NCBI GenBank assembly: GCA_965240325.2
Contig: OZ251226.1
Coordinates: 3,162,001-3,226,000 of the forward strand
Direction of reading: 5' to 3'
Length of the DNA stretch: 64,000 nucleotides
From: Rebecca billardiae RCC1528
Lineage: Eukaryota > Protista > Haptophyta
Shown here: piece after piece, positions 49,538-55,106 of the stretch
Numbering within the stretch: position 1 is the stretch's first letter
Layout: each line of letters begins with the position of its first letter
Program-made: the position numbers and the translations under genes
Notes under the pieces: generated by a model
The model's input: the letters and a program-made list of their open reading frames with translations, nothing else
The model's database searches: none
What the model was told of the DNA's origin: nothing

Positions 49538-50846
49538 TCAGGGCCGGCGGCCGCCACCGCGGCCGCCTCCTTGGCCTGGCAGGTTGCGCAGGACCGGCTC
49601 GGTCGCCTCCGCAGGCGGCTGCATGCCGTACTGCAGGTAGAGCGGCGCGAGCGGCACCGCCATCATCGCGTGCATCGCCTTCTGCTGAGCGCTGAAGCGC
49701 ATCGTCGCCGCGAAGCCAAAGTCGAGGCCGAGGCGGCCAGCCCAGCAGTCGAGGATGGCGATCGCCTGGTTGAGGTTCGCCTCGAGCAGGCTGTTCAGGT
49801 CGGCGTGCTCTCGGGCGTAGACCACCTTGAGCATCTCGCGCAGCTTCTTGGCCGTCGCCGCCGCCACGTCTGGCGCTGTCTGCGCGAGCGCCCACGCCTC
49901 GCCGCCTGGGGCGCCGCTGTCGGCCGCATCGGCGGCAGGCGCGGCCTGGGCGGCCGCTGCGCCGGCGCCGCCGGGCGCAGCACAGAAGAGCACGCGCGCC
50001 ACCTCCTCGCGCGCGAGGATGGGGCTGAGGCACGCGAGCGTGTCACGACAGACGCGGTGCGTCGCGTCGGAGAGGCTCGCGTCGCGCTGCACGCGCGGGC
50101 TCGCCCAGCCCTCCAGCTGCCCCTTGCTCGCGTCGAGGTACGAGAGCCACGCGTCAGGAGCGGAGCGGATGTACGCGGCGACGCGCCCGCCGTCCGCCTT
50201 GGAGAAGTTGACGCGGCCCGAGGAGCGCTGGCCGCGCCAGAGCACGCTCGAGACCCACTGCGCGCAGCCGATCACAATCTGCTGGCCGAAGCGCGCGGCG
50301 ACGCGCTCCGCATCCTCACGGAGCAGCGAGCGCACCGCTGCGTACAGCCCAGCAACCTCGGCCGCCGCGTACGGCGCGCTGCGGTCGAGGGCCTCGAGCG
50401 CCTTCAGCCGCGTCTGCAGGGGGAGCGACGCGTCCCCGATCGTCCTGGCCGCCTCGGCGCCCTGCGACTGCATGCGCTGCTTGAGCGAGGCGCACTCGGC
50501 CTTGTGCCCGTGCTTCCAGTTCCGCTTCTGGCACGCCGCACTGCAGTCTGCGAGCAGGCGCGCGCAGGGGAGGGCGGCGCGCGTGGGGCCACGGGCGCGC
50601 GCGCTCAGGAGCAGCAGCGCGCACCGCGCGGCGCGCACGCGCGCGCGCGCATGCGCGCGGCGGCGGAAGCGAGAAGGCTCACGCACATGCCATGGAGGCG
50701 CAGCCACCGCATCGTTTGCTCGCCCCGGGAGCGCCACACACGTCGCACTCGGGCTTCTCGGCGCGATGCACCGAGGCGGTGGCGATGGGGCTCATCCCAG
50801 AGGCGACATAGCGCGCGTTGACCTCATCCATGCTCGTCACCTCCAT
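49538..50846 (-). CDS. MYND-type zinc finger protein. Exons 50846-50687, 50547-49538
   Basis: Splicing 50548-50686 gives CDVCGAPGASKRCGGCASMAYCSAACQKRNWKHGHKAEC. Confidence 0.88.
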
Positions 50847-51042
50847 CGTCGCCGTCGTCGTCGGAAGCGCTGCAGAGCGCTTGCGCGGGCCGTGCCTTTC
50901 CCGCCGCCCGGTGCCGACAACCCACTGATGGTTACCCGTCGTGCGCCGAGCGAGCGCCCGCGCCGCGGCCGGTGGCATCAGGCAGACAGGCACCGGCCCG
51001 GGCGGGCGCTCGAGATTCGCTTGCTGCAGGCGTGCGGGCGCG

Positions 51043-53545
51043 ATGGGCCGCACCTCAGCGGCCGACTCGGGGGCTCGCCGCGAGCCCGAGGTGCGGCGTA
51101 TCTCAACAGATGACGCGTTCGCTCAGCGCGTCCACCTCCAGCTCGAAGAGGCGCGCGCATCAGGCCGGCAACGCAGGCTACGCGTGAGTGGTCCGCCCCT
51201 GGTCGTCGCAGTGCTCGCGCTTACGTGTGCGCTGCCGCTGCTGTGGTTGGTCGCCTCTTTGGACGAGGAGTGGCTCAGCTCGCCCATCTTCTGGAGCTCA
51301 CTCTTGCTCATCACCGCCGCGCTCCCGCTCATCCTCGTGTCTGTGCAGCCGGTCGATACTCGCGCGGTCATCGCAACAAGCGTCGTGAGTGCGATGTGGC
51401 TGCTCATATTCTCATCGGGTGCCGCGCTGACCATCATGTTCGACTTCAGCGTGTGGTGGCGCCTCCCAGCATGCGGCACGCTGGATCATCTCTATCTCGA
51501 GTTCACGCTCGAGGCGATTGGCTTTGTTGTCTATGGCGCTGGCGGCTGCCAGCTGATGCTGCTGCTGGCGCTCCGCTGCGTACGTGGCGCACGCGGCATC
51601 CCTGCTCCTCGCTTGCTCGGACGGACGTGGATGACGGTGGGCGTGTGTTACGTCTACTTCGCGCTGGCCCAGCTTATACTCTCCGCGTACATCTTCGCCG
51701 CGCTCTCGTTGCGCCGGAGCGGCGCGCTGATCGCCACGGTGCTGCTGAACGACGTGCACACCGCGTGCTGGGCAGCCTTTTTGCTCACGCCGCAAAGTCG
51801 GCAGCGCACGCACGCGTGGCTCGCTGAGCGGAGCGACGGGGTCTCGACTGCCGCGGGCGTCGCCGCGATCATCGGCGGCTCCACCCCGCAGGACGTCATC
51901 CGCGCCGGCCGGCGGCGCATGCGCGCCATCGTGCCATCCCAGCTCGAGCACATCCGTGCTGACAGCGACAGCGCCCATGGCCGCGATGGCAGTCAGAATG
52001 CCAAGAAGAAGGGCGGGGTTGGCGCCGCGGCACGGCCGCCGCGGGAGCACATCTTCGGCAAGAACGTACCCGGGGACAACCAGTGGTATCAGCGCACCGA
52101 GCCAGCCGACCTTGGCGGCGTGGACGCCTTTGTAAGGTGCGAGGCAGCGCAACACCCGGCACACGCCGCGTCCGCGAGCGCGCGCGGCCACCAAAGGCCA
52201 TGCGTAGCGGCCTCGCCACAGTGCTGTCATTGGTGGCTGCCTGCTCACAGTGACCCCGCCCGCACGTGCTTCATCCGCGCGCCACACGCGGCGCAGTCAC
52301 AGCTGGCACGACGAGCCCGACGACAAGTGGGCCGCGCTCCAGCAGTGGACGCGCACATTCCAGCGCACGCACGGCCGCGAGCCTCGACTCTGGATCGACC
52401 GGGCGTGTCTCGACCAGCACGCGATTCTTGAGGAGCTGACGCAGCTCCCCGTGTACCTGGCCGGGTGCAAGCAGCTGCTCATCCTCGCCGGCGGCACCTA
52501 CCAGCGAAGGCTCTGGTGCGTGGTCGAGCTCTTCATCTTTGTGCTGATGGGCGGGAAGGCAGTCGAGCTCGTTGTCCTCCCGTCCCTCGGCGGGGGCGAG
52601 TCGGACGCGGCGGCGGCTGAGCTGAGTGCGTTCAGGGCGGAGAGGTGCGACTGCTCCGTGCCCGCGGACTACGAGCGGCTGCTCGGCTGTGTCGAGGCGG
52701 CGTGCGGCTCGTTGCCTGCCTTTGACGAGCGTGCACGCGCGCTGCTCCTCTCCGCGCCCAAGTCTGAGCTGCGCGCCGGCGGGCTGCCGCCTCGACTGCA
52801 GATGCTGGCAGCGAACAGCGGAGGCGGCGGCGGCGCGAGGAGGCGCGAGGCGAGATGGCGCGCAACCCTCGGCCGCCCCGCCGCGTGCTGCTGTGTGCTC
52901 CTGGCCGTGTACGTGTGCGGCGTGGTCGCAGCCGTCGTGTGGTTCAGCCTGCCAGCGCTCGCGGCGTGCGACGCGTGCGACGCGCTGCTCGCGCGCACCG
53001 CGGTCGGCGAGCAGGGCTGGCACAGGAGTCCGGCCGAGCGCGGCGGGAATCTGGTGCTCTTCTCCTTCTCGGGCGCGGGCCTCGCGGGCGACGGCGTCGT
53101 CGCGCACGCCGAAGCGCAGCGGGAGTGTGCGGCGCGTGGGGCGCGGCTGGCGAGCGTGAGCACGCGCGCAGAAAACGAGCTTCTCGAATGCCTTCGGCGT
53201 GGCACGGCCACACGCTTCCCGGTTTGGATCGGGCTCTTGCGCAACCCTGGCGGCGATGACCGCGAGGCACCAGGCGCCTGGCGCTGGGCGGATCAAAAGC
53301 TCGCGCGGCCCGCCACGCCCGGCCACTTCTCCAACTGGGCACGGGGAGAGCCAGCAGACACGCGCACAGTGAACGCCTCGCTGCGCGAGGCCAACTGCGG
53401 CGCAATGGACGGCAAGGGTGAGTGGCTCTCCGTGCCGTGCGAGCCCGCTAACCGCGGTTCTGCACTGCCCCTGGCGTGGCTGTGCGAGCGACCTGCACGG
53501 CGACGGCGCCGGTCGTACTCATCTTCTATCTGGGCGGCATCGTAG
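51043..53545 (+). CDS. 780-aa receptor-like protein: ~6 TM, TIR-like domain, TM, C-type lectin domain. Exons 51043-52136, 52297-53545
   Basis: Intron 52137-52296 yields DAFVSHSWHD, followed by LWIDRACLDQ, LPVYLAGCKQLLILAGGTYQRRLWCVVE. TM CVLLAVYVCGVVAAVVWF. CTLD AEAQRECAARGARLASV...ENELL...VWIGL...WRWAD...FSNWARGEP...NCGAM...GEWLSVPC...WLCE. Confidence 0.85.
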
Positions 53546-54089: not shown

Positions 54090-54920
54090 TCAGAGCCAGA
54101 GCTGTGCGATCAGCTCAGCCGCGTCCATCTCAGCGCGCTCGGCATCGGTCATCGCAGAACGCTGCCTTTGCTCACGCTCATGATGCGCCCTCACCGCGCT
54201 CAGTAGCACGCGATCAGCGGCAGCGAGCTCCGTCTCCAGCGGCCTCGCGGCGCTTCCTACCGCGCCCGTCTCATCATGCAGCCGCAGGTCGAAGACCAGC
54301 GGGTACTGCAGCCGCGGGCCCGTCCCAGACTCGACGTCAATGTCGGCCGGGATGGGCAGTGCAACCAGCCCGGAGTCACGCAGCGCGTTGAGCAGGGCGC
54401 TGTCGTAGCCAAACGCGCCCCAGCGCCCGATTGTCTGCGAGAGCAGGCACACTGGCCGCGCAGGACATCGGCGCAGCAGCTGCGCGAGCAGCCTGCACGC
54501 TAGCATGGCGGTCTCCTCCGAGTAGACGAGCTCCGAGCCAATGTATGCGTCGAAGGGCGGCAGCTGGTCAAAGGCAGGGTGGCGCCAATCGAGCTCTGCC
54601 GTGGTGACACGAGCCCGGGCGTGGTCTGGAGTCACGGCCTCCACGATGCTTCTGAGGTTGTCCAGGGCGCCGCCTTCTCTCATCTCGCTCATGCACACGA
54701 GCTCGATGTCTGGGCGCACAGTCGCGAGCACGATGCCGACATACCCAGTGCCCGCGCCGAGCTCGAGGACGCGTGCGCCGCGGGGCAAGCGACGCACGGC
54801 ACACTCAAGTAGCGTATGCGCGGCAGGCCACACGCGCCGGCTGCAGTGGCCCGAACGATCCGGCATGCGCTGCAGGACGTCCGCCGCGACCGCGTCGAGG
54901 CCCTCCTCCATGGAGTCCAT
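54090..54920 (-). CDS. METTL21/EEF2KMT-like protein lysine methyltransferase (Methyltransf_16)
   Basis: RVWPAAHTL, RVLELGAGTG, AELDW, YIGSELVY. Confidence 0.85.
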   Translation of the reverse strand: MDSMEEGLDAVAADVLQRMPDRSGHCSRRVWPAAHTLLECAVRRLPRGARVLELGAGTGYVGIVLATVRPDIELVCMSEMREGGALDNLRSIVEAVTPDHARARVTTAELDWRHPAFDQLPPFDAYIGSELVYSEETAMLACRLLAQLLRRCPARPVCLLSQTIGRWGAFGYDSALLNALRDSGLVALPIPADIDVESGTGPRLQYPLVFDLRLHDETGAVGSAARPLETELAAADRVLLSAVRAHHEREQRQRSAMTDAERAEMDAAELIAQLWL

Positions 54921-55106
54921 GCCTGACGCCTTGGCCGGATGCACTGCTCTGCCGGCAAGCTCATGCGCGCGGCGCCCACCCGGACCGGAGGCACCGGGAC
55001 GGAACCAGTCCGGCGAGCGGCTTCGCCTCCGCACTTTCGGCGGTTCAGCAAAGGAAGGAGCAGGATGGCGGCAGCCCAGGCCTGAGCACAGGCGCCCTCT
55101 GCAACA

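Follow-up and report, generated by a model that had tools for sequence, protein, structure and literature searches.

TIR domains are a common currency of bacterial, plant and animal immunity, and the fungal HET domains are the least understood of their relatives. In PMC9153377, which cites PMC4986451 on this point, HET is described as a remote TIR relative that retains a functionally important glutamate. A glutamate of this kind, within a Trp-Cys-x-x-Glu (WCxxE) motif, is well established as catalytic in plant TIRs (PMC9153377). In Podospora, a lectin fold gives recognition specificity to the HET protein BH (PMC10890737). A TIR of Chlamydomonas makes 3' cyclic ADP-ribose (3'cADPR) in a Glu-dependent manner (bioRxiv 10.64898/2026.04.20.719644), and in the haptophyte Gephyrocapsa huxleyi, TIR genes are expressed in virus-resistant cells (PMC12489294). 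Marine phytoplankton hold very large, unstudied sets of the HET-like TIR domain. The present analysis concerns one gene that carries such a domain, located in a stretch of 64,000 nucleotides from Rebecca billardiae RCC1528 (assembly GCA_965240325.2, contig OZ251226.1, positions 3,162,001 to 3,226,000), hereafter called the window. All coordinates are positions within the window. The predicted protein combines six transmembrane (TM) helices, a TIR-like domain, a seventh TM helix and a C-type lectin-like domain.

In the literature, no publication was found on a C-type lectin domain linked across a membrane to TIR or HET, or on a family of proteins with six TM helices followed by a TIR domain (6TM-TIR). 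The architecture of the window protein is secure; everything past it, including the function, we infer. We lean towards a receptor-like multi-pass membrane protein of a pavlovophyte-type haptophyte, in which the lectin domain would be the input and the TIR-like domain the output. An immune role is suggested by the domain families alone.

Results

Gene model and splice junction

The DNA of the locus has a GC content of about 70%. A frame-1 open reading frame (ORF), from the first ATG at 51043, encodes a hydrophobic region that ends in GGVDAFV, and a frame-2 ORF carries SHSWHDEPDD and continues up to the stop codon. Removal of one GT-AG intron joins the two frames (Table 1), giving a coding sequence of 2343 nt that encodes 780 amino acids with no internal stops. 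The codon at the junction, with ag from exon 1 and t from exon 2, encodes serine, and the product reads DAFV-S-HSWHD. The junction 52136/52297 was the sole one to keep the frame and to restore the motif DAF[VLIM]SHSWHD, which is unbroken in 40 aligned relatives. An alternative GT at 52132 and an AG at 52249-52250 were rejected, as they break the frame or the conserved motif. The GTGAGT at 51185-51190 was also rejected as a donor and is coding instead, the relatives carrying an RLRVSGPP motif at this place.

Exon 1 aligned colinearly with the homologues P0002 and P0012. The spliced protein aligned as one colinear piece with P0001 (residues 178-719, E 1e-70) and with P0002 from Pavlovales sp. 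CCMP2436 (residues 87-694, E 8.5e-63), and both alignments span the junction, the TIR-like domain, TM7 and the lectin domain. The GC content at codon positions 1, 2 and 3 was 0.67, 0.52 and 0.81 in exon 1 and 0.72, 0.58 and 0.84 in exon 2, and was flat in the intron (0.76, 0.72 and 0.70). Because of the colinear alignments and of this codon-position pattern, present in the exons and flat in the intron, the sequence indicates a real two-exon gene, beyond chance. The original prediction, made from the same DNA, had placed one intron ahead of the TM helices. A single intron was borne out, but not its place: it lies past the six-helix module and the linker and interrupts strand A of the TIR-like domain. 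The coordinates, motifs and glutamate codon that had been given with the prediction were all correct when read from the sequence.

It is very hard to credit that the gene model is an artefact, with two ORFs that are separate genes or decayed ones: the six-helix ORF (51043-52431, which runs on across the intron) and, from 52250, the TIR-lectin ORF. The splice is known from comparison alone, and an automatic gene caller recorded the unspliced ORF of 462 amino acids (P0049) on two assembled contigs. However, the splice restores a motif that is contiguous in the 40 relatives, the read-through tail past residue 364 is without a homologue, the alignments with P0001 and P0002 run colinearly across the junction, and the codon-position GC backs both exons and not the intron.

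The TIR-superfamily domain and its candidate catalytic glutamate

A structure model of exon 2 was built by AlphaFold with 49 sequences; strand A is absent from it since this strand lies on exon 1. Residues 1-155 of exon 2 were modelled with a predicted local distance difference test score (pLDDT) of about 90. In VIA-align, the top matches of this part were the SARM1 TIR (Z 7.9, 113 residues aligned) and the RPP1 TIR (Z 7.4, 130 residues), followed by Caenorhabditis elegans TIR-1, MyD88, SpbK, IL-18R-beta and ThsB. All but one of the top 30 rows (29/30) were TIR, ThsB, SEFIR or nucleoside deoxyribosyltransferase structures, with Z of 5.7-7.9 and 102-130 residues aligned. The best Foldseek match was RPPT-TIR (probability 0.95, E 0.03). 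When a profile of the family was compared with the PDB sequences at E ≤10, five matches were obtained and all five were TIR domains, the best being SNC1 (E 0.025). The profile alignment put RLWCvvEl on STWCLNEL of SNC1 and on SSWCLDEL of AtTIR, and DAFVSHSWHD on DVFLSFRGHD of AtTIR and DAFISYSEHD of a TLR. Invariant in the family alignments were the H, S, W and D of SHSWHD, W-x-D, a proline, and R-x-W-C; the WCxxE glutamate was conserved at 90% or more, both among 49 relatives and among 40.

Pfam TIR, TIR_2 and HET gave no match on the window protein, even at E ≤1 for the TIR families. With the isolated domains of 40 relatives, HET was matched by 21 (best E 1.2e-4), TIR_2 by 18 (best E 9e-4), TIR by four and ThsB_TIR by two, the displayed scores lying below the gathering score (for TIR_2, for example, 13.4 bits against a cut-off of 28). 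In a scan of 49 whole proteins at E ≤0.01, HET was matched by two sequences and the other TIR-type families by one and none. The neighbours of the domain in the ESM Atlas were haptophyte clusters, labelled either heterokaryon incompatibility domain or TIR domain, and an Emiliania huxleyi relative (P0043) is named a heterokaryon incompatibility domain protein in its source record. The conserved blocks of HET domains are S-Y-x-W-G, W-I-D-x-L-C-I-x-Q and R-x-W-x-x-Q-E. Against this consensus, the HET-type blocks were recognisable in the window protein as SHSWHD, WIDRACLDQ and RLWCVVE. The domain itself measures about 165 amino acids, against the 220-240 that are reported for HET (PMC12881547).

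Membership of the TIR superfamily is considered secure, because the evidence from the modelled fold, the profile and the motifs agrees, though the single scores are modest. Judged from its sequence, the domain belongs to the HET-like branch of the superfamily and is not a standard TIR. The original prediction of a TIR-like domain was therefore upheld for the fold, by the model, Foldseek and the profile, but not for a standard TIR, as Pfam TIR and TIR_2 found nothing and the domain is HET-like. The WCVVE glutamate had been predicted to stand at the catalytic position, and it does align with the catalytic glutamate of plant TIRs.

The same TIR-like fold was found among the Atlas structural neighbours fused to H-NOX (a haptophyte cluster of 89 members), TPR and DUF285. 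The hosts of these fusions were haptophytes, oomycetes and diatoms, with TPR in the oomycete and diatom clusters. Across marine protists, the domain seems to be reused widely for output.

Membrane module, linker and predicted topology

Exon 1 was modelled by AlphaFold from an alignment of 30 sequences (pLDDT 78.7, predicted template modelling score 0.71). The model has TM helices at residues 52-73, 81-100, 106-139, 148-180, 188-220 and 227-248. A long N-terminal helix continues into TM1 (residues 19-73), and four soluble helices follow TM6 (residues 250-313). The model thus bears out the six or so hydrophobic helices of the original prediction, and the further TM helix that it had placed after the TIR-like domain was also found. 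Solved structures resembled the six-helix module as generic helical bundles alone (Z ≤8.5). A Pfam and NCBIfam scan of this part gave no match, and a word search with it returned just the unspliced ORF of the window itself (P0049). The homology of the module was seen instead by aligning the N-termini of the proteins that had matched the TIR-like domain. The closest shapes in the ESM Atlas were two haptophyte clusters (TM-scores 0.58 and 0.54). THH1/TOM1 and GPR137 came up as weak leads in the Atlas (score 0.82) and were set aside, as this score is at chance level.

The alignment of the N-termini gave the family motifs R-x-R before TM1, LP.D.R between TM2 and TM3, R..L.R.W before TM5, and P..R.RV..WL...G....AAGIAAL.G......A...FR.V after TM6. 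Because these motifs are shared, the six-helix module and the linker form one conserved unit, which accompanies the TIR-like domain. Such a unit could also be read as an effector and not a passive anchor: a channel or pore under the control of the TIR-like domain or of the nucleotide that this domain makes, with ion flux or membrane damage as the output and a lectin that merely positions the protein. The family-wide conservation of LP.D.R, R..L.R.W and AAGIAAL.G together with the TIR-like domain, and the presence of the module in most members without a lectin, are in line with this idea. However, the module has no likeness to a solved channel or transporter, matching generic helical bundles as described above, and the fusions of the TIR/HET-like domain to H-NOX, TPR and DUF285 suit an output domain carried by sensors. 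A channel is therefore regarded as quite improbable, and the module is treated below as part of a receptor.

The balance of lysine and arginine on the helix flanks was 19 on the presumed inside against 4 on the presumed outside. Because of these counts, and of what is known of the biology of the domains, the N-terminus and the TIR-like domain are predicted to be cytosolic and the lectin domain to lie outside the cell or in a lumen. An outside position fits a disulfide-bonded lectin domain. The earlier argument for a TIR-like domain inside and a lectin outside holds with these counts. TM7 is flanked on its presumed cytosolic side by ARRREARWRATLGRP. It opens at the presumed cytosolic edge with three consecutive cysteines (residues 562-564, TGC TGC TGT, 52886-52894), where the homologues P0002 and P0012 have one cysteine. 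Such a position of cysteine at the edge of a TM helix is typical for S-acylation.

The C-type lectin-like domain

Pfam Lectin_C matched the C-terminal part of the protein with an E value of 5.2e-9 (37.3 bits against a gathering cut-off of 22.6, profile positions 6-99 of 107). The best solved relatives in phmmer were CLEC4D (E 1.7e-5), tetranectin, langerin and BDCA-2, and 29 of the 30 nearest Atlas clusters were Lectin_C (scores 0.93-0.94). The four canonical cysteines are present, and the WIGL core is found as VWIGLL. The sequence therefore contains what reads as a genuine C-type lectin-like domain, as had been predicted. In the structure model, the lectin part had a pLDDT below 50, with few aligned sequences, and Foldseek listed lectin domains at a poor root-mean-square deviation.

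True carbohydrate-recognition domains are marked by calcium site 2 and a sugar triad of EPN or QPD together with WND, and in the window protein this site was incomplete. The substitution of EPA for EPN and of WLS for WND, noted in the original prediction, was confirmed, and both canonical motifs together were found in none of the four lectin-bearing homologues. P0001 has EPN but WFG, and P0002 is nearly without the long loop, which varies widely in length and sequence among the four. Because the sugar and calcium site is incomplete, the proposed glycan sensing was not sustained, and specific glycan binding is unsupported by the sequence. The ligands of C-type lectin domains also include proteins, lipids and inorganic compounds (PMC8260672). 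The motif P-x-x-A-x-C-x-x-C just outside TM7 was invariant in all four lectin-bearing homologues. It includes a CxxC (Cys589 and Cys592, 52967-52978), which could form a disulfide next to the membrane or bind a metal.

An incomplete sugar site would also suit a non-enzymatic surface or adhesion protein, in which the lectin-like domain binds the cell's own covering, a scale polymer, a mineral or a partner cell, and in which the TIR/HET-like domain is a protein-protein scaffold without NAD+ (nicotinamide adenine dinucleotide) chemistry, as in animal TLR adaptors. Many TIRs signal by homotypic assembly, and filaments of MyD88, TRAM, TRIF and MAL were among the structural matches. HET domains are without known activity (PMC10197012), and a lectin without the sugar and calcium triad has the other ligand classes named above (PMC8260672) open to it. 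On the other side, at least 90% of relatives retain the WCxxE glutamate and its Trp-Cys, which is expected of an active site more than of a scaffold, and the top structure and profile matches include the NAD+-cleaving SARM1, RPP1, SNC1, RPPT and ThsB. A role in adhesion or scaffolding alone is accordingly thought unlikely.

Family and distribution

The word search gave 48 relatives, largely from marine metagenomes and transcriptomes, and also from Diacronema lutheri, Pavlovales sp. CCMP2436 and Emiliania huxleyi. The typical relative has several TM helices and then the TIR-like domain with a short tail. Lectin_C was found in four of 49 sequences, the window protein included; the other three (P0001, P0002 and P0012) share its order of six TM helices, TIR-like domain, TM7 and lectin domain. 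In the 116-member Atlas cluster, one of those nearest to the six-helix model in shape, Lectin_C was present in 22%. Among environmental stretches encoding the TIR-like domain, the best 80 of 116 were analysed, and no lectin domain was found downstream of the TIR-like domain in any of these 80 loci. No relative was found in the viral contigs searched, and a word search with TM7 and the lectin domain alone gave no match at E ≤0.001.

In a tree of the TIR-like domains, the four lectin-bearing proteins formed one group together with one long-branch sequence (support 83/86), and the window protein paired with P0001 (support 91/90). TM7 and the lectin domain may thus have been gained once. From these comparisons, the 6TM-TIR core is widespread in marine protists and the lectin tail marks a small Pavlovales-type subfamily. 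The lectin came late, and in a restricted lineage, to the 6TM-TIR/HET core, which must therefore work without it.

The P0002 gene (L005, MU631741.1, 1501-3972) has the same architecture, with at least two introns at positions other than that of the window gene, so intron positions are not conserved within the lectin subfamily. P0012 (L001) and P0001 (L002) are each encoded by one uninterrupted ORF on a JGI contig of about 2 kb, which fits transcripts of the whole fusion in relatives. These two contigs were checked for poly(A) tails and none was present. The samples are presumably culture transcriptomes of the MMETSP.

Table 1. Features of the two-exon gene and its predicted protein, by position in the window
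Feature	Position	Strand	Residues	Description
Exon 1	51043-52136	+	1-364 and two bases of codon 365	Predicted cytosolic N-terminal segment, six TM helices, helical linker, start of TIR-like strand A (GVDAFV)
Six-helix membrane module	51196-51786	+	52-248	Family-specific; from AlphaFold model and hydropathy
Predicted cytosolic linker	51787-52104	+	249-354	Conserved HAWLAERSDGVSTAAGVAAIIGG...RRRMRAI helices and a low-complexity stretch
TIR-superfamily HET-like domain	52105-52762	+	about 355-520	About 165 residues, split by the intron
Motif FVSHSW			362-367	
Motif LWIDRACLDQ			396-405	
Motif LWCVVE			437-442	
Intron	52137-52296	+		160 nt, GT..AG, phase 2; frame 1 to frame 2
Exon 2	52297-53545	+	365-780 and stop	Stop TAG at 53543-53545; remainder of TIR/HET-like domain, TM7, C-type lectin domain
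Glu442 of WCVVE	52526-52528	+	442	GAG; candidate catalytic glutamate
Seventh TM helix (TM7)	52880-52954	+	560-584	Hydropathy 2.76; long helix in model
C-type lectin-like domain	53009-53497	+	about 603-765	Canonical cysteines 642, 732, 746 and 761; WIGL
EPA in place of EPN	53348-53356	+		From sequence and CLEC4D alignment
WLS in place of WND	53423-53431	+		From sequence and CLEC4D alignment
N-x-S sequon			Asn724	One in the lectin domain

Two Logan contigs, L003 (ERR14847151) and L004 (ERR14847148), match the window over about 50043-52750 and carry the unspliced ORF. Both stop near 52750, just before a GGC-rich low-complexity stretch (about 52815-52850), and their shared end probably reflects a break of the assembly where the sequence is very GC-rich. 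Upstream of the gene, an ORF of 399 amino acids on the reverse strand (49541-50737) contains, towards its N-terminus, C..C...W.HGHK.EC, which resembles the second half of a MYND zinc finger; this ORF had no Pfam match at E ≤0.001. Downstream, an ORF of 314 amino acids, also on the reverse strand (54093-55034), encodes a Methyltransf_16 (lysine methyltransferase) domain (E 2.9e-13).

Discussion

Proposed mechanism

In the receptor interpretation, the variable long-loop face of the outside lectin domain would bind a ligand, for which a protein or a surface polymer is as plausible as a sugar. Binding would shift the clustering or packing of the membrane module and bring the cytosolic TIR-like domains together. 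Clustering is a general activation rule for TIR domains. Self-association might then switch on NAD+ cleavage, or the production of a nucleotide signal, at Glu442; scaffolding, assembly-based signalling or cell death would be an alternative output. The six helices, the linker and the TIR-like domain would form an ancient working core, to which TM7 and the lectin were added as an input module in one Pavlovales-type subfamily. As this output domain occurs joined to sensors of many kinds, a second-messenger role should be considered at least as likely as that of a suicide NADase.

A bolder proposal, which we hold to be doubtful, is that in haptophytes and their neighbours the HET-like TIR domain serves generally as an output enzyme coupled to receptors, making an NAD+-derived second messenger when a sensor is engaged. 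Its product would be an isomer of cyclic ADP-ribose (cADPR) or a related nucleotide, its role would be like that of animal cyclases and kinases, and the window gene would be the lectin-gated version. If this were true, the window protein would be without precedent among known multi-pass surface receptors in signalling via a TIR-type enzyme.

Several points weigh against the receptor interpretation as a whole. The support for the splice is comparative, and the topology and localisation are predictions; the loop between TM5 and TM6 has two arginines on the presumed outside. The structural Z scores of 6-8 are middling and come from a model without strand A, the window protein has no Pfam TIR or HET match, and the relatives match weakly, with displayed scores below gathering. 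The model of the lectin domain (pLDDT below 50) is unreliable, and its sugar and calcium site is incomplete. Most relatives, including all 80 environmental loci, are without a lectin, and the TIR core does not need one. Enzymatic activity or NAD+ cleavage has been demonstrated for no HET domain (PMC10197012, PMC10890737). Because HET domains keep the glutamate, yet have no demonstrated enzymatic activity, Glu442-dependent NAD+ cleavage by the window protein is put forward as a reasoned suggestion.

If such cleavage were true, the HET-like branch would have its first known activity, and there would be a way into the study of cell-death or second-messenger signalling in haptophytes. The gene is a compact, testable candidate for the way in which an alga could couple sensing at its surface, be it of a virus, a bacterium, a mate or a grazer cue, to TIR-type chemistry inside.

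Comparison with known systems

The TIR genes described in virus infection and resistance of Gephyrocapsa (Emiliania) huxleyi come from the same host group (PMC12489294). They were defined by Pfam TIR families and reported without additional known domains; that paper describes no six-helix module, no C-type lectin domain and no TIR placed between TM helices (PMC12489294).

Among the NAD+-cleaving TIRs, comparison was made with SARM1, the plant proteins RPP1, SNC1, RPS4 and RUN1, bacterial ThsB and SpbK, and the Chlamydomonas TIR that makes 3'cADPR. The window protein resembles them in fold and in the Trp-Cys-x-x-Glu helix, which falls on the plant WCLxEL, and these enzymes are activated by clustering. 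It differs in that the structural alignments have 8-14% identity and that the loop between strand A and the following helix reads SHSW and not SFRG.

The best sequence matches of the C-terminal domain were the animal receptors CLEC4D/MCL, langerin, BDCA-2 and Dectin-1, with which it shares the four canonical cysteines and WIGL. Animal C-type lectin receptors are type II single-pass proteins that signal through the immunoreceptor tyrosine-based activation motif (ITAM) and Syk, whereas the window lectin has an incomplete calcium and sugar triad and is joined to a TIR-like domain.

Like the window protein as predicted here, animal TLRs and TLR-like TM-TIR proteins have a recognition domain outside the cell, cross the membrane and carry a TIR-superfamily domain in the cytosol. 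Box 1 of TLRs (DAFISYSEHD) is close to strand A of the window protein (DAFVSHSWHD). In the window protein, however, the order is inverted, the TIR-like domain standing before the last TM helix and the ectodomain being C-terminal. There are six extra TM helices, and the TIR is of the HET-like kind and keeps a candidate catalytic glutamate. Leucine-rich repeats gave no Pfam match in the window protein which, with seven TM helices and its TIR-like domain between TM6 and TM7, is not a TLR.

Fungal BH is a soluble, cytosolic protein, and its lectin fold is of the fruit-body (actinoporin-like) type and binds a PII-like protein. The window protein has a C-type lectin beyond a membrane helix and seven TM helices in all, and its TIR-like domain is shorter than a HET domain (about 165 against 220-240 amino acids) and falls below the Pfam HET threshold. 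In BH, specificity comes from the lectin fold, and cell death is believed to be carried out by the HET domain. Both proteins carry a TIR-related HET-type domain and a lectin-type recognition domain in one polypeptide, and three motif blocks, S-aromatic-x-W, W-I-D-x-x-C-x-x-Q and R-x-W-x-x-E, are recognisable in both.

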